Assembly: GCA_002189035.1 (NCBI GenBank)
Contig: NEEC01000004.1
Location: 2,852,001-2,916,000 of the forward strand
Direction of reading: 5' to 3'
DNA: 64,000 nucleotides
DNA from: Utricularia gibba
Taxonomy: Eukaryota > Plantae > Magnoliophyta
In this document: positions 7,265 to 41,630 of the stretch, piece after piece
Position numbering within the stretch: the first letter of the stretch is position 1
Layout of the letters: each line of letters begins with the position of its first letter
Made by a program: the position numbers and the translations under genes
Notes under the pieces: generated by a model
The model's input: only the letters and a program-made list of their open reading frames with translations
What the model was told of the DNA's origin: nothing
Database searches by the model: none

Positions 7265-8597
7265 TCAGCAAACAAATGAAGAATCAACGTAATCATCACT
7301 GCAATAGAGACCAGGTCGCTGACTGAAGCCTTGACTCTTCAGCAGCTCCCTTGCCTTGGTAACCAGCTCTTGGTTGCTCACTGCCCCATTCGATTCCGCA
7401 ATTATCCTCTGAATCGCATTACTCAGAGCCCCATAAGCTTCACCTCCAGATGGTTTAGCATCAGCTGATGTTTGATCAGATTGGCACCCACTGATCAGAA
7501 CCCCACAATCGGGTAATCCCCTTTTCGTGGCACCAGCATATGCTTCTTCCTTCTTCCCAACCGGCGTTTCCAATGCAGGTTTCACATAACCTCCATCGTT
7601 GTCTTCCAGTTTGCTCTGCAAAAACTGCATAGCTAATCCACCCCATCCCATCATCCCAACGCCACCACTTCCCTGACCACCACCATCTTGACCCTGTAGC
7701 TTACTGAAGATGAGGTTCATGAATTTCTTTACTTTAGGGCTCGCTTCGTCCCCGAATGCATCAAAGAGGGTAGGTCGCACATTGCCCACATCTATATCAT
7801 CTTTACCTGTTTTTTGCTTGAGTAGGTCGATTAGAGTTGATAGTGGGAGAGATTTATCCTTAATGTGGTACCCTTCTGGTTGGTGTTGTTCCTCGTAGTA
7901 TTCTTGTTGCTGGTGACGCCTGTGGTGATGGCTATGCCCCAGCTCCGGTGGAATGTGGACACCGCGAGATTCGATTGCGTCGGTGACGGTTTTACGAAGA
8001 AAGTTACCGAATCCGAAAGCGGATTCGCCACCTCCTCCATCCGATTGCTTCGTGCTGTGACCGATCTGCTCCTTGGCTTCATCGATCAGTCCTCCACTGT
8101 GACAAGAATCGGAAACAATCGTGATCTTGCACCCTTCCGGCACCTTCTCCACAAGATGTCTGAAATCGTCATCTGTGCAAAATGCCCAAATTCAGATAGG
8201 ACAATCTCCAATGCCCTAAATCTACAAATCAGGCAATATTTAAAGATTTACCGGTGATGAGATTCATGTCAGTGGGAACAATGCACTCATCGTAGCCTGT
8301 ATCATCATCCTCGCCGCTCTCCGCCGGGAGACGAGTGCCGTGTCCACTGTAGTGAACGAAGAGAAAATCTCCGGAGCGTGCGGATTCGACGAGATCAGCG
8401 AGAGCAGCGCGGATGTTCCGCCCGGTTGGCTGCGTGTAGGAGTCGTCGGTGTCGATGAGCACCTTGATGTCCTCCTCGGCGAATCCGTAGCGCTGGACGA
8501 GGCAATCGTGCATACGGCGGACGTCATTGATGCAGCCGCGGAGCTCGGCCTTGGTCCCCGGATAGTTGCAGCCGATGAGAACCGCCTTTCTCGCCAT
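7265..8597 (-). CDS. MC4: Type II metacaspase (AtMC4-like), 2 exons, 417 aa
   Basis: Exons 8597-8252 and 8172-7265; 79-bp GT-AG intron; 1254 nt. Begins [26 protein letters not shown]. Catalytic His (HYSGHG) and Cys (SDSCHSG), KDKSLPL autocleavage site, LISGCQ and QRPGLYCSD motifs. Symbol denotes the clade, not proven orthology. Confidence 0.97.
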
Positions 8598-9089
8598 CCG
8601 TTCCGACGAGCTCCGAGAGGAGTGTCGTCTGTAAAGTGGATGGTGGATATACCTTACGATTGATTGCGCCAACCGATAAGCTGTTAAAAACTGAACACTT
8701 TTTTGTGTTCTATTATTTTTTATTTTTCTAAAATAAAATATCTCATCATCCACACCGAAATATTTCTTCTGCTTCCATGACAAAGATATTCTTTTTTTAG
8801 GCTAATAAATTTGGCATAAATGCCATTCATTTTCAAAATTGAATACTCTTAAATGATGGGTGGATTTTGCTCTTCCTCCAATCGCCACCACACACGTCAA
8901 CACGCTTTAATAAAAAAAAGCCATAAATGTAGTCGATTCATTTTTTCTATACAAATATTATAAAAAAAACACAAATTGACCGTTTTTTTGTATAATTTAC
9001 GTAGATTATGATAGTGGGTGGTTATGATAGGTAAACATGTCTAAATGGGTTTTTTTTAATATGAAATTTAGTTTAAGAAAATAAAAGAG

Positions 9090-9420: not shown

Positions 9421-10525
9421 ACCGGGAAACCGATGGCGCATCCACCGGATCGCACAGGAAGCCCGAGGACACAGCCGTTTCCGGGATCAGCGACGCAACA
9501 GTCCATCGCCAGCTTGACTAATCGAGAAACTTCTGACACCTCTTAATCACCGATGTGCCTCTAGTCTCGAGACATGGGGTTTATGGAGTTAAGATCCTCC
9601 CTTATTAAGGAAACTTTCCTAAATTCAGCTCAATATGAAACTTTCCATCTTTAAATAAGCATTGAATATATAGAAATTCATATAAGGATTGGATTTATTA
9701 GACTCTACATCAATGTTTTAAAAACAGGTTAAATCTATTGAACTATTTAGTTCTGGATATGAATTTAACCATTTTTAGAATGAATTGAATTGAGTTTATT
9801 AATTTTGAATTATATTTATTACAATATTAGAATATAATTATAACATTATTATTTAATTCATCAAAATAGTGAAAATATAAAAAATTAAAAATATATTTAT
9901 AAACATTTGATATAATTACGTTAAAAAGTTTTATCAAAACCATATTTATTATATTATATTTCATTTAAATGATGTGTAATTTAAATACGAAGGAGTATTT
10001 TTTTATTATCAATTTAAATAAATAAATAAATATATGTATAATTATTAAAAATTTATTTAATAATATATATATATATATACATCAAATATTTATAACATAT
10101 TTTATATTTGTTTTTAACCATCTTCACTAGGTAAATAGTAAAAAATTAAAAAAAATAACAATAAAATAATGGTTCGAATCTTACCCCGTGCAACCATGGG
10201 TTTAACCCATGTTTTTAAAACACCACTCAACATCTTCAACTTCAAATAATACGATATTGATTGCATGTATTCAAAAAAGTGTGATTTGTCGAATTTTTAA
10301 AATAGAGAAATGAAGTATTATTTTTTAGATTTATCTTAAGTAACCCAAATTCATAAAGGCACATAGATATTTATTTTGTTTATTTTTCTGGCCCAATCGT
10401 CGCGTCTCGGAGCAAGGGAATTGCAGAACACCACCCAAGAGGAGCTTAGGGCTTGGGATCCATACCGAAGCTTTCGATTCTACGAATTGAAGATCGCTGA
10501 AGAAACTTGAGAATCCTTGAAAGGT

Positions 10526-12565
10526 ATGGCGTTGAAATTCTTGAACAAGAAGGGCTGGCATACGGGAAGTCTCCGCAATATCGAAAATGTGTGGAAGGCG
10601 GAGCAGAAGCACGAAGCCGAGCAAAAGAAACTAGAGGAATTGAAGAAGCAAATACGTGAAGAACGAGAGCGTGCGGGATTTCGCCAGCTACAGGAGGAAG
10701 CAGGCCTCATCTCGTAATATCTCCGCTTCGTTTTCAAGTTTTTGTCTTTGTTGGTTCTGGTTTAATTGAGGGGGCGGCGGGGGGAAAAGGAGCGGGGAGT
10801 TCCACGCTTTATTTTTCAGAGTTCTCGAATTGGGATTTCACTCTCGGCAAACAAATGCATTTAGTTAGGGTATTTGAAATTTGGAGCCTAAGTCGATTTT
10901 TGCTTTTCTTCATGTTTCTGGGATATTGACAATGGATAAGTCGGTATTGAATTAATTTTTTTTCTGTGTAGAAAGCAGGAGCGTTTGGAATTTTTGTATG
11001 ACTCTGGGCTAGCTGTTGGAAAGAGTTCTGGTTTCAAGACGCTAGAGGCTTTGCCTAAGACTGAGCAAGAGGCTACTCCATCATCATCTGCTTCTGCAAA
11101 GGTTCTTCATTTGATGGATGCTTTGCATTCCTAGAATTGTTGGTTATATTTTTGTAGTTTCTTAAAAGATTTACAAATTTTTTTCTTTATGGCAACAGGA
11201 GTCAGCGGGGCCGGGTGCTTTGTTTGAGGAGAAGCCACAGTCATCTAATGATGCGTGGAGGAAACTTCATTCGGATCCTCTGCTTTTGATTCGTCAGAGG
11301 GAACAGGAAGCACTTGCTCGTATAAAAAATAACCCTGTCAAGATGGCCATGATTCGAAAATCCGTAAGCCTCTGTGTACCTAACCTCGTAAAATCTACTG
11401 CCTTGACTGTTGCTTGAGTTCTGCTCAACATAGTTAAAAACATTTAGTTCACTTGAAACCTTGAAGTTATGAAATGTCTTCATTTGTTGTTAAACATGTT
11501 TTCTAAAGCCCCGTCACATCACCATATTCATCTGTTTATTCATGTCGTTCCAGTGTTTCTTGTTCATGGTCGTGCTGAATTTCTGTGTGGTCCAGGTTAA
11601 TAACCAGCGAGTGAGGTTTAAAATCTGGTTTTTCTAGAATATTATAGACTGGAATCATTATAAGGAGCTACTAGATTCTATGATTTTGTGAACTATGTAT
11701 TTGGTTTTCAAATTCAACCAGTACCTTCCTGTGAGTGTGACGTGACAGTAAGGTTTCTCTTCCCGTAGGCACTTGTGATGCTATCCATATTCTCCTTAGC
11801 TTGTACATTCATTTTAAATCTGATTCCATTTTACAGTCCGGATGTCCTTCTGTACAGCTTATCTTATCTAACTTTTGGAAGTTTCTAACTGATCTTCAGG
11901 CCGAATCAGAGATGGGAAAGAATAAAAAAGAGAAGAAAAGGAAAAAAGATGGAAAAAAATCATCGAAACATCGAAAACATTCATCTTCAGAGAATGACTC
12001 AGACCATGACTCCAGAGATGCCTCGCGGAGACCAGAAAAGCGAAGAGATGTTCATCCTGAGAAGCTTGAGAAGCACTCCCATAGGTTATCCCGCACATCA
12101 GATGATGAGGTTACATTGAAGCACCACGAGAGGGAGTACAGAACTGGAAGACACGGAGGCTATGCTCAAGATGAGGATCGGCAGAAAAGCAAGGGTAGCA
12201 GTGACAAAGACAGCCGTTATGGCACTTCTGCTAAGCCACCACAGTACGAGCCCAGAAGCACGCGCCGAAATCCAGTACAACTTTCAGAAGAAGAGAGAGC
12301 TGCTAGACTGAGGGAGATGCAAATGGACGCTGAACTTCACGAGCAACATAGATGGAAACTGCTGAAGAAAGCGGCAGACAAAGACAAGCAGGAGGCAGTC
12401 CATGATGAAGTTACCCGAGGTAGGAATTTCCTCGATGCTGTGGAGAAGAGTGTGTATGGAGCTGAGAAGGGCGGAAGCTTGACCATTGAGGAGAGTGTTC
12501 GCCGGAGAACACACTACTCCCAGGGGCGATCTGCAACCGAAACCAATGCTTTTCGGCGGTCTTGA
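10526..12565 (+). CDS. CWC25: Pre-mRNA splicing factor CWC25 homolog, 4 exons, 382 aa
   Basis: Exons 10526-10713, 10972-11101, 11199-11363, 11900-12565; all GT-AG; 1149 nt. Cir_N-type start MALKFLNKKGWHTGSLRNIENVWKAEQ, then QERLEFLY and WRKLHSDPLLLIRQRE, and a Lys/Arg/Ser-rich tail. Confidence 0.93.
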
Positions 12566-14085
12566 TCTGCGCACGAGAGATCCTTCAGATGTACCATTAA
12601 TATCTTTACCGTGGAATGGTTCGAACATTACTTGTTTGCATGGATGCGTACATGTAGACGCTTGTCTGGCGAATATGGTGGTGTTGAGCATCATTCGTTT
12701 GTCGTTTGAATAAGTTAGTGCCTTGGTTCCTCCTGTAAAAGGCAATATTATCATAAAGCTGCCAATCGGATATCCTTAATATTATCTTGCCTACAGCCGA
12801 TGACAAGGCACGAAGTGTAACAATGGCGTAAAACTGCACATATAACAACGCAAACTGCACATCTACAGCCTATGCGCACAAACTGCACATATAACAGCAA
12901 GTGCAGTATCCCCTGCCGCCGGTGGATGCCTTCCTCGTGATTGATTCTCATCAGAAACGAGAGATTCTGAAGAATGGACCGGGGCCGGGCGCTCACAGTG
13001 CATGTGATGGTGAGCTCAAGCTCGATTCAAGCATATCGTTCATGGGAGCTATACATGGGTTTCCGAATCATTGCTCGGACGTTGCTTTTTTGTGGGCCTA
13101 GCAGTTGGGGTATCGGAATCAGAGGTAAGGGGCAGGATTCGTCCACAGATTGGCTATTCTTGCCAGGGGCAAGCTCTTTCGAAGGAATGTCCATGGGAGG
13201 AGATTCAGATGTCGGGACAGGCGTTGGTGGATCCATCATTTGGGAGTCAAGCAGCCTGTATCCGCCCCTAAGCCTGGTGCTTCGGAGAGGAATCCACTGC
13301 GACGTTATTTCTCTTTGATTACCTTCTTTAGGTACTTTCCTTGAGCTTCAATTCACAGTTGTACATGTCTTTGTACCTTGATATGCGATTTAAAGTAATC
13401 ATTGGAAGACTCCGTAAAAAACTAAAGCAATCATAAAATTGTGCGATATCCTTCATTTGACATGGAGGAGATTTGAAGGGCAACTCTCAGCACCTACATT
13501 TCAACTCATAATGTAATGGAAACTTCTTTGGAGAAAGTGAAAATTATTGAAAGGCTTAACTCCAATTTTTCATGAAGCTGTTTTTGAACCTCCAAATGTA
13601 GCTTGAGGGCCTCGGTTATTTGCATACCATTATAGGGAGAAAAATCAAGTTAGCCTTCAATAGATTATAATAACCACCATTGCTACGAAAGTATGCACTG
13701 AAAAATGCTGACTGCAGATGGTGCACACAAATAATCCAAGCTAATAGTTGAGGCACGTGAACAAGCAAAAAAAAAAAAAAAAAGGAAAAAAGAGAAAGAA
13801 ATACCACTTATGATGAGCCATCAATTGTACAAAGCAAATCTCCAAATTTTGCTTTTTCAGCCTCCTTCCCTAGAACATGTTTTTGATTCATAACTAGTTC
13901 TTGACTTGGGATCAAAAAAAAAAAAAAATCACATGCTTTATTGGAACATCAAGCAAGGAAGATATGATACCAACCTTCATATGAAAAATCCGGAAGGTAC
14001 TTTGTAAGACGGTACTTCTGATCACAACAATAAAATTAGTGTGGGCATGATGAAGGGCAAACACATCAAGGGGTTTCTAGCATGG

Positions 14086-17000
14086 AAAACCAAGAAGCTA
14101 GGCAATGGAATGCCAAAGTGCAGTTGGCCTTGGGGATCCTTGAAGAGAGGGTATGGGCAGCGCACTAGGTTGTATCAAGGAACCTTTGGGTAAGTCTCTT
14201 GTGCGAATCACCATATTCTTCTACATCTCCACATTTCCGATGATGTGGGGTGCCACCGATCTAAGGAAATCATTTTCCGATTGTGGTAATCTAGTAGATG
14301 CATATGTGAGATGCTGCCAAAACAAGCAAGGACAACCGTTTGGGTTCCTACGTTTCAGCTGCTTCCAAGAGAAAAAGTAGCTAAAGGCAAGAGTGAAGGA
14401 GAATGCAAAGGCTATCGAGAATATATTTGTAAGGGAGTGATAACACATATTTTTAAGTGATTGAGTGCATGGAAAATATTTATATTGTGATTTAGTCTCA
14501 ACCTTCTAATAGTTTTACTTGAGCAATGCAGTGCAGGTCGCAACACGAATCCCAAGGAGCCGAATATGCACAGTGTAGTGGCAGAAGATGAGTCCAAATG
14601 TCTTAAAAGTGGTACACACAAAATCCAAGGAGGAAAAAGGGAGATTTTGGACAAAAAGGGAGAAAAGATGAGAGAGAAGGTAGATCTCCCCTTGGAGACT
14701 CACGAACACATTTTCTGGGGAGAAGGTTTTCTGGGGAGGAAGAAGAAAGAAGACAAACAGGAACGAAGCTGAAGTTCAAGATTATTTTCTGTCTTCAAAG
14801 AATATTACTCCTAGCTAAGAGTAGCTAGTGACGTTTTTCAGTTTTTGTTGACACTTCACATTACTTGCTTGTTTGCTTTCTAGTATTTGACTGTGAAATG
14901 AGCACACTATGGGTGATGTTTTCTTTTCCACTTTCGTTTACCTTAAGCATGAGTGGCTAAGTACTTAGGGGGGTGCCTTGGGGTAAAAAGGGGAGAAAAA
15001 TGTTAATCAACCTTTAGATCTAAACACCCATGAGTCACGCTACTTCCTTAACAAACCAGGATAGATCTAGGAGAGGGAAGTAGTGAAACCCAACTTAACA
15101 ACCCTAATTAGAGGTAGACCAAAGATTAGGGGGAAAAACAAGAATCCGGGTAGACCTAGATCTTGTGAGTTAGTTGTATGATTTGTGGTTTGTGTGAGTT
15201 TGTTTAGTGATGAGCATACATCCCCTAGGAGTCCCAAGGCATCACCCATTCCATTCCAGAAACAACCGAACTCTAGAACTTATTACTTTTCTTTACTGTA
15301 TTTTGTTTAGTTCTGCTTTAGTCCTAGTTAAAACCAATTTTACCAACGTGACATTGATTCCTTGCATTGACCTTCACATAGCAAGCACCTAGCTCCTTAT
15401 GTTCGACCCTAGTCCACTATGCTCATAATTGTTTTATGCTTGAATGTGTATTAGGTTATAAATTTATTTGATAGGAAAGTTTACATTTACGACGTGTGAA
15501 TTTTTCGTTTATCAGGGAGTTTAGAAATGACAACAAATCCACTCATAATTTCAAAGGAAATCGTTGGTCTCAAGGGAAGGAATCTGCTCAACAACACAAC
15601 AACAGACTTGGATACTCTTATGTATAGATCATCCGAGGATTGGAATCACAAACACGTAGGGATGCTAAGCTTGTGAAGACAATAGTTGACCTCACTTAGA
15701 CAGTGCAACTAGGAGCATGGGTATCGAAATTTGTGCTGGGAGATTTAATGATTCAAGCTTTATACAAGGATGTGTATAAAATGCTAGTAGGTACAAGCTT
15801 CCTAGATGTGAAGGTGACACAAATTAGAGGTTTAAGAGTTTTACTCAAGTTTGTATCTGAGGAAGTTAGAGAATTGTCCATGGAAGCAGGAAAAGAGTGG
15901 TTCATTAAGCATTTTGAGTGGTAATGCAAGTGGAGTTTTATAGTTCATCCAAAGATAGATAGGCTTGGATTGATATCAAAGGAATACCTTTACAATGCTG
16001 ATCTACAAATATTTTATTGCAATTGGCCAATAATGTGGTAAGGTGATAGTATTTGATGATACTACCTCATCGAGGAGTATGATGATTGACGGAAGAATTT
16101 TGAGTAGAACCTCAAAAATAAATTGGTCAATTGCAAGTATCTTGGGTAAGGTATGGAGATGAAAAATCGATGATGTGGGTCTATGAAGCCTCTAACCATT
16201 CGATCAACCTTCTCCTATATCATAATAGTGATAGCATAATGTGCGATGGGACAATGAATGAGATATCCTCATTTTGCAGTGTAGATGGGAGAAGATGATA
16301 GTGATGGTGAATTTTTCTTAGAGATTCCTAATCTAATATCAAAAGAGGGGACAACAAAAACAACAGTTGACATTCCTTCTTTGGATAGTGCTCAACCTAT
16401 AGTGTAGCATTTAATCAGGAAAAAAATAGAGTGCAAAAATGCTCATTAATAACAAGGGCAAGGTGTGAAGGGGAGGTTGTGAGGATCCCATAGGATACTT
16501 TGGCTCCCACAAATAACTAGTGGCTTACCCATAGAAGTTAAATGTCACTGAGAAAGGAATAGTAGGAGAAGAGACCATATCTACACCTTCTTGTTCTGCT
16601 ATCGACATGGGGATTGATTCTTTTCCAAGATTAGCTTAGGCAGTTGGTGTGAGGTTATTGTAGAATAATCAAAGGGAGGTTCAACAGTATCATGTTAAAC
16701 ATCCTTCTTGTGAATATTAGAGGCATGAAAAGTCAAGAGAAGAAGAGAGCAGTCAAAGGTACTATGACTCATGAAAAATTAGATATTATAGTAATACAAG
16801 AAACGCAAATACAAGAGATCATCACTAGACCAGTAATCTCTATTTTGGGGCACAACATAATGTAGTTTCAACTTTTGAATGTCCAATAGAAGATCTAGTG
16901 GGCTACTGAGTATATGGGCATGAATAGGGTGGAGGTTGATGCTTATGCGTAGGGGTGAGGTGGCAAAAACTTTGATGCAAACTTTTATCCTTGGAGGAAA

Positions 17001-20000
17001 TATTCGAGGTGTTCAATATCAATGATTCACACTCGATGGCACAAAAAAGCGAATTTTGGGGAATGATGGGAAGCTTATTACAAAATCAAATGATGTCTTT
17101 TCTTATAATTGATGACTTCGTCACCTCAAGGGCATCAGAAAGGTGAGGCTAATCACGTCCTGAGACAAATGAACATAGAATTTTGTAAGATTTCATGGAA
17201 AAGGCAGAGATGATAGATGCATGACTAATTTATAGTATTTATAAATGTTTCTCATTGCCAAAGTTTATGCACTTCAGCGAAATGTAGCTAATCACTGTCC
17301 AGTGCTATTTAGTTTTCAATAGAAGAATGATGGACCTAAATCCTTTAGATTTCAAAATAAGTGGTTGCAAAGACCAAAATTACAGGAGATGTTGAAAGAG
17401 AAATGGTCATGTAAGTGGTCAAGTGAAACCATCTACAGGAGGCTACAACTTATGAAGGTGGAAATCAAGGAATGGAATAGATCAGAATATGGTAAATTAG
17501 AGAAACATATTAGAGTACTTGAAGGAAAAACCAAGATGCCAAAGTTGAGAGTAGAACAACAAGACCTTTCAGAACATGAGATTGGTGAATATTTGGAAGT
17601 TAAAGTAGAACTTCACAATAAAGGACAAAACTGCAAATCCCCCTTGAGATGGCTAGAACTAGAGGATGAAAACTGCAAGTTTTTTCACAGTGAATCGAAA
17701 GCTTTTAAAGTTGAACTAGGTGGAAGGCATAATGATTAATTGTAGGTGGATTACATATGTAAATAGTTTGAAAAAGGTAGCAGCAAATCAATTGAACTCT
17801 ATTTTCTCACTTTTTGATACTAAATGTGGTACAATGGATTTTAGTGGAATCAAAAGTTTAGATGAAGATCAAATGTTCTTTTTGGATACTCCAATTGATG
17901 ATGAAGAAATATTCGAAGCTATCAAAGAGTGTGGGTGGGATGAATGTCCGAGGCCGCATAGTTTCAATATAGAGTTCTTTTCAAAGTTTTGGGATATTAT
18001 TGATAGTGATATAAGAGATCATATCTTTATTCCACTTTTATCAGTTTTATATCAAAGAAACTGAATCTTACTGACTTAAGTGAATACTGGTCAATAAGTC
18101 TAGTACATCGCTTTATAAGATGATCACAAAAATTTTAGTGAGATGGTTCAAAAAGGTGATACCATGTCTCATTTCTTTGGAACAATCTGGGTTTATCCAA
18201 CGGAGACAAATAGTTGATGGGGATTTTATAGCTAATGAGATTGTAAGTGAAGCCAAGTGAAAGAAGCATAAAATGAGTCCACTAAAAATTGATTTTGAAA
18301 AAATATTTATGATTAGAGCCATGGGGTTCAATATGAAATGGTCCTTCATTCTAGACATAATGAGGTCATGGGGTTCGGTGTGAAATGGCTGACATGGATA
18401 CGAGTATGCATATCCCAGGTTACCACATTGATTTTTATCAATGGATTGGCATTTCCTCAATTTTCATCGAAATGCGGACTACAGCAAGGGGATCCTCTAT
18501 CTCCTTTCTTCTTTTTCATCATTGGAGAGGGTCTACACACCCCAATAACTAGAGCACTTGCAATATGCTGATGACACCATATTGTTTGTTGAGTAGGGAG
18601 AGCAAAATCTAAGGAATTTCTCCAACATTCTTAAATGTTTTCATCTTGTTTCAGGTTTATAGGTGAATTACCATGAGAAAAAGCTTATCAGTGTTAATGT
18701 GGGAGCTAAAGAGATGACAAGGGTAGCAACGATACTTGGTTGTATCAGAGGTTCCGCACCATTTCAATATATCGGGTTGCTAGAAGGGAAAAATATAAGA
18801 AGGGTCTCAACTTGATCCTCCCTGGTGAAAAAGTTCAAAAACAATTACAAAGGTAAAGTAGCTAATTCTTGTCTAAGGGTGGATGCTTGACATTATGTAC
18901 GGTGGTTTTAGACAACCTTTCAATATATTATTTCTCATTATGTGAAGTTCCATGATTGATATTCAAACAACTCGAAAAAATTAGAATGAAATTTTTTTGG
19001 AATGAGTCTAATACCATGAAGCAGAGGATCATATGGGGGCATGGGGACAAATCAAAAATGCATATGAGAGAGGGGGGCTGAATGTTGCAAAGTTTTAAAA
19101 CTCGAATATATCATTGCTAGTAAAGTGGTGGTGGTGACTTAAGAAGGAGGGAGAGGGGAGTGAATTATGGCAACAAGTGGTGATATCCATTTATGACCAA
19201 GGGGTGGAATCAATTGTAATTTGGGTTCCATATTGTATAATATTACATGGGGTAGGATAGCATATCTGTCAAAAAATTTTAAGGAAAGATTGGCCAAATA
19301 TTGACATTCATAGGTGGTTCAAGTACATATGAGGAGATGGATTGTAGGTCATAGTTTGGAAGAACTCTTGGGCTGATTTAGGGGGGACACTTAGAAGTCG
19401 AAATTCGGGGCTTTATGGAGTAGTGTTGTATAGACAAGCTACATTGAGTGAAGCTTGGGAATAAGAGGCAAGTGACATCATGGAACAATAGCATCATCAA
19501 GAGCTTACATCAGCAGCCTTGTGGATAGATTAAAATTTTTAGCAATGATCTGAGATTCAAGAAATGAGCGGGAAAATAATTCTCTATTGTATTAGAAGAC
19601 TGTTGAATTGAAGCAAGATTCATCTACTTTAGTGGGGAGTATTCAACCAAAAATATCAAGTAACTTCTTAGACCTCCGGTAGAACATACATCATCCTCAC
19701 CATTTTTCTTTGGGTGAGGATTTTTCTATGACTATTGATCCAAGATCGGTTACCAATGAGAGATAACTTGATGGCGAGAAATGTAGAATTGAGTGATGCT
19801 ATGTGTAGTAATTGCCATAGGTTGAAGGAAATTGGATGTCATATCGGGTTCTAATGTGGAGGTGCTTAAAGGTTATAGATTGATATATTCAATTGGCTTG
19901 AAAGCAATTATTTATCTATTCCAAATCCCTAGAATCAAAGGTTGGAGGATTGTTTGGAAGGCAATGATTGCTTCTACTCTTTGACTATAATGGAAGGCTA

Positions 20001-20150
20001 GAAATCATAATATATTTAGGGTTTTAATGTGACTACTAGTGTTGGCATTAACATGGCTACAAGAGAGAATATGACGGAAGAAAATCCTAGTTTTCTTACG
20101 GCTGTAGTTTGCCCTTTTTTTAATGAATTGAAGTTTGCTTAAAAGAAAAC
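14086..20150 (+). mobile_element. Near full-length decayed L1-type LINE (~5.0 kb without the nested LTR)
   Basis: ORF1 RRM (FFYISTFP..W...DL..SF...G.LVDAYV...PFGFLRF, 14210-14380). Endonuclease start (NIRG..EKKRAVK..IQET, ~16715-16805). RT motifs (KIDFEK, GLQQGDPLSPF, YADDT, 18280-18580); post-RT W motif; A-rich tail 20141-20150. 11-bp TSD TTCTAGCATGG (14075-14085) / TTTTAGCATGG (20151-20161). Confidence 0.88.
14438..15514. mobile_element. Solo LTR (window family A, Gypsy-like), 1077 bp, nested in LINE ORF1
   Basis: Termini TGATAAC...TTTATCA; perfect 5-bp TSD GGGAG at 14433-14437 and 15515-15519. Confidence 0.9.
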
Positions 20151-22266
20151 TTTTAGCATGGTGCTTGCAAGTGACTCTTCATATGGTAAATAGTAAACTC
20201 TTGAACACCCATACTTCTAAGAACACTTTTAGGAGTAGTCCTTATATAACAAAAAGATCATAATTATACCAAGTTAGTACCTATTTCTAGGCGGATTCTC
20301 ATGGGGATATGCATTATAGTGATCTCACAATTCACACTCCAACAGAGAAGGCATGTATAAAATAGTTTTGGTCAAGTCTATTACCTTTTACAATTTCTTC
20401 TTTGTGAATCCCATCATTCAGTATGCTTTTAATATAGGTAATAATGTAGCCAACTACATTGATCAATCTTCCTATCCTTCGACCAAGGCACTCTTCCAAT
20501 ATGATTTCGAGATCTGAAAGGAAAGTATTAAACTCTCTAAACCCATGGGTTTGGTAAATAAATCTGCTATTTGCTTCTTTGTTTCAATGTATTCTAGTTT
20601 GATCACTCCGTGTTTGTAGGATTTTCTCACAACATGACAATCAACAACAATTTGCTTTGTCCTCTTGTGTTAGATCAAATTCCAAGTGATTTGGATTGCG
20701 GCTTTGCTATCACAAAATAATAGCACCACTTCTTTTGCATGAAATCCAAGCTTTGTTAGAAGGTAATGTAACCATTTAATTTCACAGTTCTTCATAGCCA
20801 TATTTTAGTACTCTACTTCTATGGAATACCTTGATATTGTGGATTGTTTCTTGGTTTTCCAAACAAATAGTGGTGAACCAAAGAAAATGACATACTCCGT
20901 TAAGGATTTTCATGCCAATGAACAACATGCTCAATCGAAGTCAAAATATTCCTTCAAACTTAGTTAACATCCTCTCGGGTAAAACAAACCTTTTTCTACT
21001 ATTTCCTTCAAACATTTTGCAACTTATGATGCTGTTTGCTAATGCTCTTTGCAAGTATTCTCCATAAATTGACTTAAAAGTTGTGTTGAATAAGATAAGT
21101 CCAGTTTGAAAAAACTAAGATAAGGAGACACCTAAGATAAGTTTTGTATATCGTGTAGGATTTGGTAATGTTTTACTAGAATGATTTGAAAAATTGAAAT
21201 GGCATGATAATGATGAATCTAGAGGCAATTCATCTAGAAGATTAAGATTAGTGATTACCTCTTCTACATATGCCCTTTGACTGAGAAAGAAACCCTTATC
21301 AAACCTAAGAATCTGAAGTCCCAAGTAATATTTGGCCTCTCCAAGATCTCTAATCGTAAAACACTCATCTAATGACTGTTTCACTATGTTGACTTCATCT
21401 AGGGAAGTTTCGATTAGCAACAAGTCATCAATGCAAATGAAACAACACAATCATGTCCCTATTGTTGCTATTAAAGAACAAGAAGATATCATGTCGACTT
21501 TGTTTCTATCCTAACATTGATAACTTAAAGGTGAGTTTTTCATTCCATTGCCCTGAGGCCTTTTTAAGCCTGTATAGTGACTTCATGAGCTTGCATACCT
21601 TTCCTTGTGTGGGTTATCCCTTTAGTGGATTCATGTAGATGTTTTCTTCCAAATGACCATGTAAGAATGCATTATTCACATCGACTTGGTGCAAATGCCA
21701 GTTGTAGGTAGCTGATAAAGCAAGAACCAATTTGATGCTAGTTGCTTTGTGAAAAAAAAAAATCTTTGTAATCTTTTCCTTCTTTATGAGAATATTCTTG
21801 TGCAACTTATCTTGCCTTCCTCTTAGACAAGGTACCATCAAGGATGGGTTTAATTTTTTTGTTCCATTTGTTGCCAATCAGATTGCAGTTATCTGTGGAT
21901 TGATCATGATCTATGTCCCATTGCATTCTAGTGCATCTGTTTCAAGATCCATTGTTTTACACTAACTTGGATCTTTGCTAACCTCTACAAAATTTGTTAG
22001 TTCAAGTTATGATGTTCTACATTCATTGATAGAATATATATAATCTTTCATTCAAGTTGATTGTGTTTTATGTCTTTTACTTCTTGCTACAAGCTCTTAC
22101 AAGGTAATTTTAGGAGGAGTAAAATCAAATGTATCTTGAAACTCAAAATCTGGCTCATCAACTTATAATGGTGTGAGAGCAAGTTCTCCAACCCCATTAG
22201 AGACAGATGTCTCATTCCCTGATTCTTCAAAACCATATTAAAACATTCCAGTATCTAAATCCCTTG

Positions 22267-23223
22267 GGGCGCATTTGGTTGGGGGGTTTGGTCTAAACCC
22301 AGGTTTAGTTTATTTGGGTTTAAATAACCCGATTTCATGGGTTTAAAGGGTATAATCCGTGTTTGGTTGATGGGTTTAGATTATTTGGGTTTAAGATGAA
22401 TACACTTTTGGTACGTGGGTTTAAAATTAGGTTTGTGATGATTTTCATATGAAATTACCAATATACCTTTTAGTTAATTAAAATAAATTATCATATATTT
22501 TATTTTTCTATATCAATTTATAAGTTCAATCAAGCATCGCATAACATAAATTACGGTGCTTGGTTGAAACTTTATTTTATAACATAAGTTCAATCAATTT
22601 CACAGTAATAATAGACGCGGTGCTCGTCTTTAAAACGAAAATTTATATTTTACAGCAAGCACCGGATAATAATATACGCAGTGCTCGTCTTCAAAACGAA
22701 AACTCACATTCAGCACCAAAAATGAAAATCCACAATATTAGACATACTATTATTACTTTCATCTTTATTTTTTTCTTTGTCTTTATCTTTATTTTCTTCT
22801 TCTTCTTCTTCTTCCTCTTCCTCTTCTTCTTCTTCTTCATTTTCTTCTTCTTCCTTTTCTTCTTCTTATTCTTCTTCTTCAATAGATTTGAACAGATCTG
22901 AACAAATCTATTACAGATCTGAATAAATATGCTATAGATCTGTAGGAATTTTAACTTTCAAAAAAATTGGTAAACAGATCTGTGCATCTGGTTTCTGGCA
23001 AATCTGCATTCAAATGTGGTTCACGCAAGGGCAAAAGTGGAAGCGCCGAGGTGGGTTTAGCTAAACCGACCTCCCCCCTGGGTTTAGCTAAACCCAATTC
23101 CACGGGTTCCCACCCGGTTTATGATCATAAGGTGGGTTTATTACCTGAAACCCACAAACCAAACGTGGGTTTTTGTCTAAACCCACGCCGCAACCCACCT
23201 AAACCCAGCTACCAAACGCGCCC
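22267..23223. mobile_element. PIF/Harbinger (Tourist-like) non-autonomous element, 957 bp
   Basis: TIRs GGGCGCATTTGGTT ... TACCAAACGCGCCC; 3-bp TSD TTG on both sides; Copia sequence resumes on both flanks; ~200-240 bp terminal blocks shared with 56499-60817. Confidence 0.85.
22790..22880. repeat. (TTC)n microsatellite inside the MITE
   Basis: Imperfect TTC run; it explains the poly-Phe and poly-Lys ORFs. Confidence 0.9.
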
Positions 23224-23509
23224 TTGTTGTGTTAGTTGCAGAACTATAGAATTTGTAAGGTAAAGTCCATTCATGAAAAAATAACATCTCTTAAGATAAT
23301 TATTTCCCTGGAAATCAAATCAAACACTTTGGATTCTTTCTTTCCCTTAGCATACCCAACAAAGATCCCTTTCTTTCCTATTTCATCAAATTTATCCATA
23401 TGATTCAATGGATTTGCAAAGAAACACATGCTATCAAAAGGCATGTACATGCAACATATCAAGTTTCCTTTTGAATAACACCCCATAAAAATCTCGATGA
23501 TATTTTCAA

Positions 23510-24600
23510 CATATTCTAAAAAAAATACTAATCATGCATTGTTAAATTGTTGCTAGTGCATTGTATAATAAAAAAGTCATTTTATAGTAAGCAAAAGTAC
23601 TAAAAGGGAAAACAAAAACAACCTTTGCTTGGTTTTCAAGTGCTATGGGTATTTGATGGAAATCAGAGTAGCCATCTAAACAACAATAGTGGCTTCTTCC
23701 AGCAAGTCTCTTCTCCATTTGATCTATGAAAGGAAGGGGGTAGTGGTCCTTCTTGGTAACTGTATTCAATTTACGCTAGTCGATACACATTCTCTAGCCA
23801 TTCTACACTCTTGTAGGGAGGAGTTCCCATTTGACATTGATCATGACCGTGATGCATGTTTTCTTCTAGATAATCATCATAGAGGTAACCCACTCATTAT
23901 CATAAATGGGATACATTATTCCTTTGGCCAATAATTTCAAAATCTTCTTCTTGACCACTTTAATCATGGGAGTACTTAATCTTCTTTGTGGCTGGTTAAT
24001 TAGCTTTGTTCCCTCCTCCAAATAAATGCAATGAGTACATATGAAGGGACTTATTCCTTTTATATCTATCAATGTCCATTTGATTGCTTGTCTATACTTT
24101 TAGAGCATACTCTTGAGTTTTTCCTCATATTCTAAAGTTAGTGTACTAGAGATAATAATAGGTAAAATCTCATTATCACCAAGGAACAAATATTTTGAAG
24201 TGTCTAGTCAAAATTTTTATCTCTAGTGATGAGGCATGAATAATAGAAGTAATCAACTGTTTATCAAGTATTTCTAAATTCAAAAATTTAATATTATGAA
24301 ATTCGGATTTTTTAGACAAATACATCATCAACTCTTCCATGAGGCTTAATATGTTATCGTCATTTTTTTCACCAGCAAACTTAAGGAGTGTCTAAAACAT
24401 ACATGGGTGCAACTCAAAGTCCTCCTCTCCATCGAAAATGATGCAGAGTAGTTGGTCAGCACGGTTTGCGACTACTTCTTCTTTAATCGTACTTAATGCT
24501 AGTCCGTGATTAGTGATCGGGAGAGTGGAAAAGTTTCAGCGTGTTGTTACTCTTATTCTCCTTGAATTGTGGGGACATCAAGAGGTAGCTAAACATCCAT
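23510..24600 (-). mobile_element. Athila-like Ty3/Gypsy RT remnant
   Basis: DIKGISPFICTH..QPQRRLS..VVKKKILKLL..GIMYPI and KDHYPLPFIDQM..RLAG..HYCCLDGYS.FHQIPIA match Athila-type RT. Confidence 0.85.
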
Positions 24601-24689: not shown

Positions 24690-25331
24690 AGAGGTACCTA
24701 ATCACTCATGATTGATAATGATGGATTTGATTAATTAAAAGTTAATTAATAAATCCATTATTATGACTTTGATTGAAAAAGCCTATAGGGTCACACACAA
24801 TAGTGGAGTTACTCATCGATATAAAATAGAATGACACAATTAAATGAGATGTAATTGGTAAAGTGGATAAATTAAATAGAGAGTTATTTTGAAATTAATA
24901 TTTATTAAACTCAAAATAAAGGATCTGATATAGATAAAATTTGGAACATATATATATCTCTACAAGATAAGATCTTTATAGAGATTTGATTTGATTTGAT
25001 AAGATCTTATATAGATAAGATCTACAGATCTACACACATCTTCGTTCTCTTTGAGATTGATCTGCAAGAGGGCGATTTTCTCTACTAGCACCTGAGGGGA
25101 TTGACCAGCATTCTGCTACCTTGAGAAGGTTATCAATGGAGTGCTTCATGTGTGGATACCATAGAGGTTGTCTGCTATTGGTGGTTGGTGAATAACAGAG
25201 TGCTCTGAAAGGTATTCGTAGTATCTCTTTATCTCACGTATACCGTATTCTAAAATCTGTGTTTGGGATTTCTCAAAAAATTTTAAATTATGCTGCACTG
25301 AGGACATAGGATGTCCACGAGAAACCAAACA
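24690..25331 (+). mobile_element. 3' part of an LTR (window family C, Copia Angela-like)
   Basis: Reverse-complement homology to 57182-57830; ends GAGAAACCAAACA. Confidence 0.75.
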
Positions 25332-25453
25332 ATAACTCCCTGTCAATGGAACCAAAAATTTGTTATGTGTCATTTCCTTAATAAATTTTAATTAGAAAAA
25401 CGTAAAGCACAATTATGGGTAGTGCAAGTGTCAATCACATGGATGTGAGTTTC

Positions 25454-26613
25454 TGATAGGTGTTTTCTATTTGTGCTTTTATGATTCTATTATGTTGGTT
25501 TTGCATTTTTTCTATTTTATTTTTCCTATTTTTTTTGATAAATTTTATATCTTTCATATTACTTTAATCTTTTTGAAGGGAAAGTGTGTGTTGTGAATTT
25601 TTAGGACGATTTTGGTTTAGAGGAAATTCTAGGTGACCTTAATTTAGGCAAAGAATAGATTATCCGAATGAAATCAATCAAAGATTATCGAATAAAATAA
25701 TATTTACATGTTATCTTAGAAGATTTAGATCTTATCCTAGGAGATTCACATCTTATCCTATAAGATTCGAATAGAAGATTTGATTCAGGGCTATGAAGAA
25801 AGCCAAACAAAGCTAGGCACCCTTATATAAGGACCTCAGTACCAAGCTTTTGGTAGAGACCAAAAGTCTTTGAGTAAGTTTAGGAATATAGAGTCAAGTG
25901 TTGCACCTTTGGATACATTTTATGTCATTTTTCATCAATTTTTGTGCATTAAATTCAAGCATGCATGTGTGAGTGCTTGTAACTAAGGATCTACGGTAAA
26001 GCCTTGTTTGCACAAGTCCTATGTGTGTGATTGTTTTACCATATTCTTCAACATTTAATTTGGGGTTTGATTATATTTTTCGTAATATTTTTTTTTTTAC
26101 TAATATGTTTTTTAGTACCATGTAACCTTAAGGGAGTTCAAACCTTAAGAAAGTGTAAAAGAATTTAAAATTGACCTCAAGCACCTAAAAAAAAGGATTC
26201 GATCAGATATTGTTGATAAGGCGCATGTGTGAGGTATGGCGATTAGGTTTGAATATGAGGAAAACATAGATTATCACAAGAAGTGAAATGACTTTGGTGG
26301 TATGGATGATTCTATAATCTTATTAAACGAGGGATAGTGCTATAACAATTATTGAGTAACACTATTTTAGAATAACATACTCAAAACTTGCATAAATGGG
26401 TTAGCACTCAAAGTTTACATACATACACATAAGCAAGTTTTAAGCAAGGTGAATTTTACATCTAAAGCTATTTTTCACATTGTTTTTAAAACCTGTTTTT
26501 TTACTTTGTTTTTGGTTATTTTTGAGTCATAATTTTTAAGAAAATTAATTTTCTATGGATATAATCTAATTTATTACTGTGACGATTTATATGCACTTGT
26601 AGAATCACCATTA
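25454..26613 (+). mobile_element. LTR (window family B), probably solo
   Basis: Starts TGATAGGTG and ends GAATCACCATTA; collinear with 51646-52836. Flanks do not form a TSD. Confidence 0.7.
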
Positions 26614-26789
26614 GAGAGAGATTTTTGATAAACGAAAAATTATGCAACGTTGTTAAATTGTAATTTTACCTATCAAATTAATTTATAACCTAATACACAT
26701 TAAAACATAAAATCATAATATATATGAACAGGAAGTTTGTTCTTTCTTTTTCATTAGAAATGTGCGCTTGATCTACGGATCTAATGGAA

Positions 26790-27625
26790 ACACTCCCTGG
26801 CTAGAATGTTTGTAAAATGAGGATATCACAAATACGGATAGGCTGAGTTCCCTAAACTGTTTAGGCAATGGTTCTCACAATTGATGTTATGAGATTACTA
26901 AAACCTATGTGTGGGTGTCGATTAGATAATCGATTCACTGGATGACTCGTCTTCGAGATGCTACTATGGGAAGCTAACCAAGTATCAGTAGCACGATCTC
27001 GAATATGACAGCCGTGCAAGTAAGCTTAGACTTGAGGTCAACAAAGTTATCTTGATCTTAAGCTCACATTTTCACTCATTACTAATGGGAGCCTAACCAT
27101 GGCTTGCCTAGTATAGATGAGTAGGGATGTGACTCCTTAAGGTTGGAGATAGTTGATTGATCAATAAAGGATTCATCACTCATGTTAGCGATGAGATCAT
27201 ATCTCAAGTAATTGCATCAAAGACTAACAGTAAGTCCTGGGCCCAAGGTAATGACACTCGAATTGTTTGAGTAGGTCATTGAGTGTTAGTATTTGAATGC
27301 AATTATAAGTTCGATACATCAAAAAGACACACACCCATGTTTTGATATCGAATAGGATACAAGTATGATGAAAGCTATTGATTACATGGTGGTTGGTCAT
27401 AAAAAGGCTCAATCAGTTTAACTGATTATTCTTTAATCTTCTGCTATTGAAACCATAGAGACTGTCTGCTATTGGCGGTTGGTGAACAACGGTGTCATCT
27501 GAAAGGTATTTTGAACATCCCTTCGTTTGATGTATACCGTATTCCAAGATCTGCGTTTGGGGTTTCTCAAAAAATTTTAAATTCCGCTGCTTTTGAGACA
27601 TACGATGTCTACAAGAAAACCAACA
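26790..27625 (+). mobile_element. Internally deleted LTR (window family C)
   Basis: Reverse-complement homology to 57870-58500, then a jump to 57182-57350; ends AAACCAACA. Confidence 0.75.
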
Positions 27626-27877
27626 AAAGGTACAGGTTAGAAGGCTTCAGATCGAACCCTCCCTCCGTTATGATTTCTTCTATTTATAGGGGAGGTCGAC
27701 CCGACCGAATCATGAGCTCCGCAGGTGTCGGCTACCTTTCTGCACTTGTGTTGTGATCTTGCTTTTCAGACAATCGTTGCCCACCCTGCCGTGACTCGGC
27801 AACTCTTGAGACTGTGCCATACCGCTCTTGTCAGATCTCTGACATATATCGATCTATCGACAGGCATTGTTTCATCA
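27626..27877 (-). mobile_element. GC-rich LTR 5' fragment (Tat-like?)
   Basis: Minus strand starts TGATGAAAC and contains a TATA-like CTATAAATAG. Lineage is a guess. Confidence 0.4.
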
Positions 27878-32097: not shown

Positions 32098-33892
32098 TCA
32101 TGCATCGTCTACTTGAGAGTGGAACACAAAGCTGGGGAACGTGGTGGTGATGTCTCTGAGACACAGACCAATCCTTTCAATACCCCAAGAAACGTTTAAA
32201 CTTAAAAAGAAAAGGGTCAAGGCTTTTAGGCAACTCACTTGAGATACTGGAGCGTCATGTTTTTAAGGAGTGAAGGGTGCTGCATCACGAGGTTCCTCCA
32301 TTCTTCCTTGTCTATCTTCCCATCATGTTTTGTGTCCGCCTCCTCGAAAGTCTGAACTCAGATGGTGTGTGTTCATGAGCAAACAGCTGAAATACACAAC
32401 TCAATTGGATAGCGTGATCAACCACCTTATCAATGATGCTTTCGATCACATCGTCTGCAAGGTTGAGGCCAGATTCAGCCAGCGTTGCAACAACCATTTG
32501 CTTAACCTGAAACAATCCCAAGGGTCTTAGTTGTTTACTCCGACAACGAACAAATCAATCAAGGGATCGAAAAGGGGAACCGAGTGATGTGCTTACCTCT
32601 TGTCTTTCAATGAATCCTTGCCGTTTGAGATCATACAACTGGAATGAAACTGTGACAATCAAAAGTATGTTATCATCTACGACCACTTTCAAGTGTCTAT
32701 ATGGCTGTGTCTTGTTCTCCTATAAACGGATTGTTTTTAAGGTTCCTTCTTTAACAACAACTAATCCCAACAGAGACTGTTTAACAGAGAACTATGAAGC
32801 ATATATGCTCTTTGACTTAGTCACAAGGCTAAGTTTAAGCTCATCAATCCTCCATTGGATTTAACTTACAATCAATTTTCTCTTCAATTGGAGCGCTGGG
32901 ATGAAACACTGAAAGAGCACGAGCAAACTCTTCAAAATCAAGCATCCCACGGTGCCTTGTATCAAACAAGTCAAAAACCTAAAGAAAAACAAGGGTCCGC
33001 TTTCCTCAACAAAAAAAAAAAAGAAAGAAAGAAAGAAAGAAAGAAAAGAAAACAAAAAACTTATGCATCAGTTTGCAGCAAAAGTCCACAAGAAAACCGG
33101 GAAAAGTTGAAGCAGTTGGCTGTGAACTGGCTCGTTAAACAAGCACTCCCCGAAAAGCTTAACAACCTTGCAGGGTGCGATTCATGAGAACTGAGAACTA
33201 ACCCTTTCTGCAAATAAGCTCCCTTTTTTGTTGGTTTTGAATAAGGCAAGTTGGAATTCTTCCTGTCAATACAATGTCACCAAATGCCACTCCGTTAAGA
33301 AAATGCAGATAAGCACATCAGCACACTTGCAATGTCTGTCAAATGGCACTGCATACCTTGTGAATCAAACCGTCATCAAACACACCGGTGCTGATCTTTT
33401 TATACAGTTCATACAAGGCTTCGATTTCACTAACACTGACTGCATCAGGAAGGCCAAAATGGCATTTAATAGCTAGTAAATAACCTAGAAATGCAGCCTG
33501 ATATATGAAAACCAAACTATTGCTTATGCTGACACCAAAGAACTACGAATGCCCATTGCATTACGTATTAAAATGTCACATACGGCTCAGTCTGAAGTCA
33601 AGGGATCTTTCTGTATATGAATGAAAGAAGAAAGTGCAAATATACCTCCCCTAGACAAAGCTAGCTAGGTTATATAACGACACAGACGTTTCACTGTATT
33701 ACATGAGTCTAAAAACAGCAGTATCCCTAGGCTTCAAGTGGCAAATATTAAAGGAATAATGTCCAACATACACACTGTCTTGCTTGCTAGAGCTTCAGGA
33801 TTCCGCAGGCCCCAGGGTAGCCTATCATATTCACCACAATTAATAAAAGCTACAAGTAGGTGTTTCACTCCTTCCAAGCACTTGAGCATCAT
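32098..33892 (-). CDS. CBL2/CBL3: Calcineurin B-like Ca2+ sensor, CBL2/3 clade, 8 coding exons, 225 aa
   Basis: Exons 33892-33772, 33439-33357, 33262-33203, 32978-32870, 32649-32597, 32506-32426, 32351-32239, 32155-32098 (121/83/60/109/53/81/113/58 nt, all GT-AG). [36 protein letters not shown] and [15 protein letters not shown] motifs; acceptor at 33896-33897 implies a 5'UTR intron. Confidence 0.97.
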
Positions 33893-39693: not shown

Positions 39694-41630
39694 CTACCTC
39701 TTTTTCCCAGTCTCACTCTCTGATTCAATCGAATCTCTTACTTTGAAGCTTAACTCTTTCCTTATCTGCTGCCTCTTGTTTTCATGAACTCTGCTGGTTC
39801 CAGGTTCAGAAGTTATACTCTTGGGTTTGCTGGAGCCCACTTTCAGCAATTCTCTACTTCTCTCATGTTCATAGAAGAGAATTCGGATGACAGTTCGAAG
39901 TGGTAAGAGTTCGTTTCTTGCAGCATCAGCTCGTACTTCTTCCGACAGCTTTTGGCAATCTAAAATCCCACAGAGCTGCTTCTTATCAGCTTTGCTCAGG
40001 TCTGGATGCCCCTGTAACCCCATGAAGTGAAACTGGTTGGTACTTCACTCAAAATCAAACTGAAATTCATGTTTCAAACTGTTTTTACTCTTTAACCAAT
40101 TCGAAGAGAAAAAAAATTAAAAGAGAGCTAGAGAAGTGGTTGACAACATCTCTTGTGCTGTGAATGTAACAGATTACCTTGAGATAGATGTTTATTGCTT
40201 TGTAGAGATCATTATGTTGGGGCCTGGCTATTTCAGGTAATGTTTCAGCAAGAGATACCATTTGTTGAACCTGCAAATTATCTTCCTTCGCAACAGCTTG
40301 CAAATACAAATCTAGCAGCTTACCAATATTCACTAAGGTCTTCATTGATTCTTCTTCATCTCCAGTATTTTCTCTATTCCGCAAACTCAAGTAACTCTCC
40401 AAAACTTTCTGAACTAATTCAATCCCTTTGCCAGATTCGTTTACCAGCAGCAAATCTTCCAAAGTTGCCTCATCAAATTTTAATCCTGTAAGTCTCAAAA
40501 GTTTTTCTTTTGTCACAGGAGAAATTGCAAGTATGTTCGCAATCCGAAGGAGTCTTAGCAAAAATCTAGCTGAAACTGCACCTCTATCAGCAGGTAGAAG
40601 GCTAACAATGGTTTCAAGTACTGTTTTCTTATTTTTTTCCTCACGAGTTGAGCTACTTCCTGTTGGTACAATTTCTGGTATGAACAACCACCGTGTTGCA
40701 TAGACATGTAACGCCTCACCAATTAGCTGCTGTTGCAACTCACTTCTAGATTCAACAGCAGAAATGATCCATCTGAATGTTTCCTGGTCAAGAAAAGATA
40801 AGTCCTCTGTCCACCAGTCTTTTGGCACAGATCTTTGCACCTTTTTCTCATATCCTGATCTGGTGTATGTAAATGACCATGTGACCTGAGCGACAAAAAG
40901 CAGTTGTATGGCACTTAATCTCGAGAGGGACCTAAAAAAGAAAAAGATTTCTCTAACCTTGTTGGTGGGAGTCAAAATTTTGTCAGCAACTGACTCCAAA
41001 CATCTTCTTACAATCCCAAGATTTTCGGACCAATCCGCAACTCTAGGGGCCGTCTGTAAAGCAAGTATGGTATCCTTCCACCCCTGAAGAATGCAAGAGG
41101 AGAAGAACGAATCCAACTTGGACACAAGGCTTTCATTTTCTATTTCTTCAGTCATTTTTAGGAACCTTGCAGCACAATAGCAAGGTACAAAGTTTTGGGC
41201 ACTGAGATTGATTGTGATCCCATAGCAGAACTTGGCACATAGCTCAAATGCTTCTTCTCCACCTGGTATGTCATGCATCTCTATTCTGACATTTTCGGAG
41301 TCATCAGATTTGGCCAAAAGTTGCTTTAATAAGCCACATTTTGGAAGAAGAGCATGCTGTAACTAGGTAGTAAAGAAACCATTCTTCAGTTCTGGTTGAA
41401 AAAATTTATGTTTTCCTTTGTCAGAAACTGTACCTTGTGAAGAAGATAGTTGACATTGTTTATCTGAATGACTATATCGCTCGGAACATCGGCAGTCACA
41501 ATTCTAGGAGAACTGAAAAGGATTAGCTTGTACTACAGAATTTGAAATAAAACATGGTGTTCTTTTTTTACCTTGTGGCTTCAGCAGTTTGGAATGTGTC
41601 TGGCCTTGTTCCAAGTTTCATGAACTTCAT
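39694..41630 (-). CDS. BTB/POZ-NPH3 family protein (At5g47800-like), 5 exons, ~517 aa
   Basis: Exons 41630-41572, 41503-41434, 41356-40958, 40885-40178, 40011-39694; 1554 nt. MKFMKLGTRPDTF, DIPGGEEAFELCAKFCYG, VPKDWWTEDL, LYKAINIYLK and LDCQKLS..NELLPLRTV motifs. Confidence 0.93.

Follow-up and report, generated by a model that had tools for sequence, protein, structure and literature searches.

The 64,000-nucleotide stretch of Utricularia gibba DNA analysed here (assembly GCA_002189035.1, contig NEEC01000004.1, positions 2,852,001 to 2,916,000 of the forward strand; hereafter the window) carries on its minus strand, from about position 20241 down to 12905, five ordered pieces whose translations follow one another along a MYB-CC transcription factor of the PHL7 type. 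The MYB domain is incomplete, with only its C-terminal half present, and its first half (the part running from RLRWT to LGG) has no match in the window. A first-pass annotation, made from the letters of the sequence, had described five exon pieces with the SHLQKY motif, the LHEKLE motif and a PHL7-like tail, and all of these were found on the minus strand. The exon sizes it gave (76, 43, 58, 70 and about 380 nt) hold for the three middle pieces, while the first measures 77 nt and the last 472 nt. The AG from which exon 2 had been counted is a cryptic site one base inside the exon, the true acceptor being mutated to AA, and the homology extends beyond the position 12993 at which the feature had been ended. 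The features of the locus are collected in Table 1, where exons are numbered as in the intact relatives.

Table 1. Features of the PHL7 remnant and of its surroundings in the window (positions count from the first nucleotide of the window)
Feature	Position	Strand	Remarks
Metacaspase gene	7265-8783	-	two long exons; Peptidase_C14
CWC25 splicing-factor gene	10511-12565	+	apparently intact; Pfam Cir_N 58.8 bits, CWC25 46 bits; homologs named CWC25
Exon 6 (last) remnant	12905-13376	-	472 nt; remaining coiled coil and Ser/Pro-rich PHL7 tail; 12905 end approximate
Exon 6 insertions	13156-13158; 12930-12931	-	3 nt; 2 nt (DNA alignment)
Exon 6 deletions	just after 13264, 13234, 13127, 13112, 13069, 12983	-	11, 8, 16, 24, 7, 14 nt, respectively
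In-frame stop TAA	13305-13307	-	exon 6
In-frame stop TGA	13353-13355	-	within coiled coil; conserved Arg codon of exon 6
Exon 6 acceptor		-	intact
Exon 5 donor	13559-13558	-	GT to TT
Exon 5 remnant	13560-13629	-	70 nt; first half of coiled coil, LHEKLE at end
Exon 5 acceptor	13631-13630	-	AG to AA
Exon 4 donor	13811-13810	-	GT to AT
Exon 4 remnant	13812-13869	-	58 nt; linker; acceptor intact
Exon 3 remnant	13975-14017	-	43 nt; begins KYRLTKYLPD
Exon 3 splice sites		-	acceptor AG and donor GT both intact
Intron 2	14018-20164	-	6147 nt (exon maps, DNA alignments)
Degenerate retroelement in intron 2	14046-20134	+	boundaries approximate; antisense to PHL7 remnant
RRM-type ORF1 stretch of insert	14144-14377	+	RRM_1 E 0.004, sub-threshold
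Endonuclease-like stretch of insert	16653-16862	+	ExoIII-like E 0.17, sub-threshold
Reverse-transcriptase stretch of insert	18317-18568	+	RVT_1 E 0.03-0.04, sub-threshold
Exon 2 donor	20164-20163	-	GT to GC
Exon 2 remnant	20165-20241	-	77 nt; second half of MYB/SHLQKY DNA-binding domain, SHLQ at end
Exon 2 acceptor	20243-20242	-	AG to AA
Copia-type retrotransposon fragment	20335-21877	-	Pfam RVT_2 E 4.5e-10 and 5.7e-11; without 3' long terminal repeat
Nested truncated retrotransposon pieces	20335-24100	-	copia RVT_2 among the pieces of this and the next such row
Purine/pyrimidine-rich low-complexity tract	22545-22957		reads as long Lys/Glu or Phe/Ser open reading frames on both strands
Retroviral SH3-like integrase piece	23274-23531		in the same debris zone
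Nested truncated retrotransposon pieces	25144-27626
CBL2-like calcium-sensor gene	32315-33542	-	exon pieces against PDB 1UHN, E 1e-7 and 4e-7
NPH3-family gene	39697-41317	-	Pfam NPH3
C2-GRAM-VASt lipid-transfer-type gene	45083-49466	-	Pfam C2, GRAM, VASt

The identity of the pieces was established by comparison with structures, with domain models and with a complete natural protein. Exon 2 aligns with the MYB domain of PHR1 in the PDB (6J4R residues 28-51; E 2.3e-5), and exon 5 matches both the Pfam family PF14379, Myb_CC_LHEQLE (33.1 bits against a curated cut-off of 29.1; profile positions 1-23), and the PHR1 coiled coil (6TO5; E 6.9e-6). The remainder of the Myb_CC_LHEQLE domain is recognisable in exon 6, where it is interrupted by the TGA stop, and the tail encoded by this exon bears the PHL7-type patches TPxPTSESP, KKQR and LESSL. 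Exon 3 and the first part of exon 6 are too short for PDB searches, which returned nothing meaningful for either, and a 106-residue open reading frame of the tail had 0 hits among 1.84 billion representative proteins.

Full-length queries were obtained by searching JGI metagenome contigs with a degenerate nucleotide pattern written for the conserved region in which the coiled coil begins, a search that retrieved 30 plant MYB-CC loci. Three of the 30 loci (L013, L003 and L026) are transcript contigs of plant PHL7 from metagenome or metatranscriptome assemblies; they lack introns and their reading frames are complete. The natural 300-residue PHL7 encoded by L013:271-1170, homologs of which bear the NCBI name PHL7 in dozens of eudicots, was run against the window with tblastn, and its matches are strictly collinear. 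Exon 2 corresponds to PHL7 residues 43-68 (77-81% identity, E 1.9e-7), exon 3, a 14-residue exon, to residues 68-80 (75-85% identity, E 0.003-0.05) and exon 5 to residues 99-123 (E 5.8e-7). Exon 4 is weak as protein (50-55% identity over 20 residues, E 0.001) and clearly homologous as DNA. Exon 6 gives four high-scoring segment pairs in three frames, covering residues 121-159, 161-208, 215-237 and 244-262, with a summed E of 1.3e-17. The collinear alignment with PHL7-type proteins, on which the first-pass annotation had made its identification depend, was thus obtained with a natural PHL7 sequence.

The exon-intron organisation of the remnant was compared with the genomic PHL7 loci of Paulownia, Penstemon, Handroanthus and Sesamum, on which the proteins were mapped exactly onto the DNA. 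All four of these intact Lamiales genes have six coding exons, of 208-220, 77, 43, 58, 70 and 537-540 nt, separated by introns of 556-655, 88-95, 124-175, 141-264 and 99-395 nt. Exons 2 to 5 of the remnant have the same sizes as their counterparts, and DNA alignments place its intron positions and phases as in the four orthologs; the last exon, at 472 nt, is shorter than in the intact relatives (537-546 nt). The absence of introns that marks a processed retrocopy is not seen, all four introns being present. As the first-pass annotation had also held, the remnant is not a retrocopy, because these four introns are kept at orthologous positions and phases. Introns at ancestral positions occur here together with disabling mutations, the combination that characterises non-processed pseudogenes, and the locus is, on its sequence, a previously hidden non-processed PHL7 pseudogene.

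The disabling mutations are numerous and of several kinds. Of the nine splice sites that survive, five differ from the four orthologs by mutation, two in-frame stops interrupt exon 6, and the indels of this exon comprise six that break the frame and two that preserve it. The open frame and usable splice sites of a working gene are lacking. Exon 1, which encodes PHL7 residues 1-42 (the N-terminus and the first half of the MYB domain), was not found anywhere in the window by regular expression, tblastn or a profile hidden Markov model; the search used 119 PHL7 N-termini, the best profile match had an E of 5 and tblastn gave no match at a plausible place. The place at which the promoter, exon 1 and intron 1 would be expected, immediately upstream of exon 2, is occupied by a copia-type retrotransposon fragment. 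The remnant cannot encode a working protein and the gene is dead, because exon 1 is missing, five splice sites are mutated, stops and frameshifts interrupt the reading frame and a retroelement has been inserted, which bears out its earlier description as a pseudogene.

The retroelement lies in intron 2, which in the intact orthologs spans only 88-95 nt. About 30-40 nt of ancestral intron sequence are kept at each end, and the remainder is a degenerate retroelement of about 6.1 kb inserted in the orientation opposite to the gene. The insert is probably a long interspersed nuclear element (LINE) of the non-LTR (long terminal repeat) class, as suggested by the order of its domains and the motifs recognised in them, with matches that are all sub-threshold. 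A target-site duplication was looked for at the insert and not found. The debris upstream of exon 2 continues with further retrotransposon pieces (Table 1) and includes a 189-nt direct repeat of 78% identity; LTR pairs were searched for in the region 20.2-32.5 kb and none was found.

The closest intact relatives of the remnant are named PHL7 by NCBI, in agreement with the first-pass annotation. In a DNA tree of the last exon the remnant groups with five Lamiales PHL7 sequences and is split from ten other eudicot sequences with a Shimodaira-Hasegawa approximate likelihood ratio test (SH-aLRT) value of 100. Its end branch measures 0.66 substitutions per site, against 0.04-0.12 in the intact relatives, and its exonic DNA is 66-68% identical to the four Lamiales orthologs, which share 83-91% among themselves. 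In the columns on which the four orthologs all agree, the changed share in the remnant is 19% for codon position 1, 22% for position 2 and 36% for position 3 (p 0.002). Because the third position has changed more than the other two, the lineage of the remnant seems to have been under selection for a period before a long phase of drift.

The genomic context points to decay at the ancestral place. The remnant and the CWC25 gene are convergent (tail to tail), with 3' ends about 340 nt apart, and the CWC25 gene of the window matches Lamiales CWC25 loci exon by exon in tblastx. In Penstemon the order is NHX, QWRF, CWC25(+), WD40(-), WD40(-), PHL7(-) and a tandem MYB-CC gene (-), with 23 kb between CWC25 and PHL7. 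In Sesamum alatum the two genes are likewise convergent, 33 kb apart, with an Asp protease, an unknown gene, a WD40 gene and a hydrolase between them. Parts of the CWC25-PHL7 block were seen in Erythranthe, Sesamum angolense and Handroanthus, and CWC25 and PHL7 carry locus tags 3-6 genes apart in Juglans, Populus alba, Citrus and Penstemon. The earlier proposal that the gene died in place is therefore supported by the linkage and convergent orientation in Penstemon and Sesamum alatum, together with the locus tags of Juglans, Populus and Citrus. The convergent pair is what the remnant, Penstemon and Sesamum alatum have in common, and the intervening and flanking genes are not shared. The block conserved in the Lamiales, as seen at L034/L037 (Penstemon), L041/L042 (Sesamum alatum), L043 (Erythranthe), L039 and L040, consists of NHX, QWRF, CWC25, an Asp protease, an unknown gene, WD40, His_Phos_1 or a hydrolase, PHL7 and a tandem MYB-CC paralog.

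In a CWC25 tree the window copy falls inside core Lamiales, with a last-exon branch of 0.55 against a median of 0.11, and it may be either a relaxed duplicate or a member of a fast-evolving lineage. Its last exon is about 50-54% identical to the closest homologs over most of its length and about 73% identical in the conserved half. Within Sesamum, the PHL7 proteins of S. alatum (P0071) and S. angolense (P0113) are 85% identical and stand in different contexts (hydrolase versus His_Phos_1/WD40); judged by this identity and context, they are paralogs from two PHL7 loci in the genus, and block duplication would therefore occur within the Lamiales. A PHL7 relic 3' of CWC25 in Orobanche minor, considered as a possible shared relic, came down to one 46-residue match (E 0.006-0.03) with no support from the other exons and was dismissed as chance.

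Several observations weigh against decay in the ancestral block. Every relative examined has two to four genes between CWC25 and PHL7 and the window has none; of the block genes, tblastx found nothing in the window but exons of CWC25 and PHL7, and no trace of NHX, QWRF, Asp protease, WD40, His_Phos_1 or hydrolase genes, the other matches listed being short segment pairs linked by sum statistics. The tandem MYB-CC paralog that lies upstream in the relatives was not found in the window either, and the remnant is flanked by the metacaspase and CBL (calcineurin B-like) genes, so that the order is conserved for two anchor genes only. With two anchors, a chance juxtaposition of CWC25 and PHL7 after rearrangement keeps a residual probability, and the exact position of the remnant in the last-exon tree is uncertain on so long a branch. 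The synteny of CWC25, PHL7 and CBL that had been proposed for relatives holds in part: CWC25 is linked to PHL7 there without being its direct neighbour, and no CBL gene was seen in the 10 kb read upstream of PHL7 at five Lamiales loci; a tandem MYB-CC paralog is annotated there at four of these, and an uncalled MYB-like match was seen at the fifth.

The same locus could have arisen as a partial DNA copy of an intact PHL7, comprising exons 2 to 6 with their introns, that was brought in by segmental duplication or by transposon capture (with Pack-MULE, Pack-Harbinger and Helitron elements considered as vehicles) and was never functional here. Such a copy would account for the absence of exon 1 and for a local gene order unlike that of the relatives. 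Exon 1, however, is lost just where retrotransposon debris marks the 5' break, which gives a simpler explanation of its absence, by insertion and deletion; random landing would rarely reproduce the adjacency to CWC25 in the ancestral convergent orientation, and the excess of changes at the third codon position suggests selection on this lineage itself. Flanking terminal inverted repeats (TIRs) were absent from 12.4-21.5 kb in a search aimed at TIR elements and not at TIR-less Helitrons, and the best inverted arms, of 18-28 nt and 74-83% identity, lie inside the insert. A partial copy is accordingly considered improbable. An artefact of assembly or sequencing, or a functional gene with unusual splicing, is scarcely credible: the GC donor after exon 2 and the cryptic AG one base into this exon are usable in principle, but the damage comes in many independent forms, with two stops created by substitution, five altered splice sites, indels of 2-24 nt, the 6.1-kb insertion and the absence of exon 1, and residues invariant in the relatives are replaced throughout, a pattern unlike read errors.

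A different question is whether this was the only PHL7 locus of the species, in which case the lineage would be left without PHL7 and without the tandem MYB-CC paralog. The location of the remnant in the ancestral block and the absence of the tandem paralog from the window fit such a unitary loss. It is nevertheless unlikely, since NHX, QWRF, the Asp protease and WD40, some of which are likely indispensable, are missing from the window as well and so are probably located in a second copy of the block; the two Sesamum paralogs indicate that block duplication occurs in the order, and CWC25 has the long branch that a redundant copy would be expected to show.

Decay in the ancestral block remains the best reading, and the remnant is very probably a non-processed pseudogene of the class-II MYB-CC gene PHL7, lying convergent with CWC25 in the ancestral Lamiales block, the linkage and orientation of the two genes being apparently ancestral. 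PHL7 would have been inactivated long ago and have drifted since, about 20% of the relatives' invariant first and second codon positions having changed, while exon 1 and the promoter would have been lost by insertion and deletion, leaving retrotransposon debris at the 5' break. The window is most likely a worn-down (fractionated) copy of a duplicated block, because all other block genes are missing and the retained CWC25 is fast-evolving. An intact PHL7 likely survives elsewhere in the genome.

The metacaspase gene stands head to head with CWC25 over a GC-richer spacer of 1.7 kb, in the slot that QWRF occupies in other Lamiales. On the other side, the CBL2-like gene lies upstream of the pseudogene, past about 11 kb of transposon debris, and is followed in the window by the NPH3-family and C2-GRAM-VASt genes.

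For annotation, the appropriate label for the locus is PHL7 pseudogene, and no short MYB-CC protein should be predicted from it. It illustrates the erosion of a gene block in a compact Lamiales genome, with a 5' exon lost to retrotransposon turnover, deletions of 7-24 nt and splice-site decay. Relics of this kind are common in plant genomes and PHL7 is an already studied gene; the remnant gains biological weight only if no intact PHL7 is present elsewhere in the genome, in which case it records the loss of a regulator. Published reports on rice, Arabidopsis, tea and wheat implicate PHL7 in phosphate, lipid and salt regulation, and connect it, in plants other than the present one, with phosphate homeostasis, seed-oil turnover and salt tolerance (PMC10933727, PMC12903457, PMC13140452). 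It is quite doubtful that the lineage truly lacks both PHL7 and the adjacent tandem MYB-CC paralog, with the relic marking the collapse of the CWC25-WD40-PHL7 block; a true loss would imply a lineage-specific rewiring of phosphate, lipid and salt regulation.

Among known systems, the remnant is closest to the intact Lamiales PHL7 genes of Handroanthus (P0086), Paulownia (P0068), Sesamum alatum (P0071) and Penstemon (P0111), with which it shares the sizes and phases of exons 2 to 5, the intron positions and the collinear order of MYB domain, coiled coil and tail, and with which it groups in the last-exon tree; the convergent linkage to CWC25 is common to it, Penstemon and Sesamum alatum. It differs from them in lacking exon 1 and the block neighbours and in carrying stops, frameshifts, five mutated splice sites and the intron 2 retroelement. 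In the structurally characterised PHR1/OsPHR2 proteins (6J4R, 6TO5, 7D3Y), the half of the PHR1 MYB domain that contains the third helix aligns with exon 2 of the remnant, and the start of the dimerising, SPX-binding coiled coil aligns with exon 5. PHR1 and PHR2, however, are class I proteins with a long N-terminal region, whereas the tail and tree position of the remnant assign it to the PHL7 clade, and it is non-functional. The remnant also resembles the fractionation pseudogenes that follow plant genome duplication, in which a relic stays in the ancestral slot, keeps its introns and accumulates small deletions and transposon insertions; here, in contrast, the 5' exon is lost and the flanking genes of the block are gone as well.

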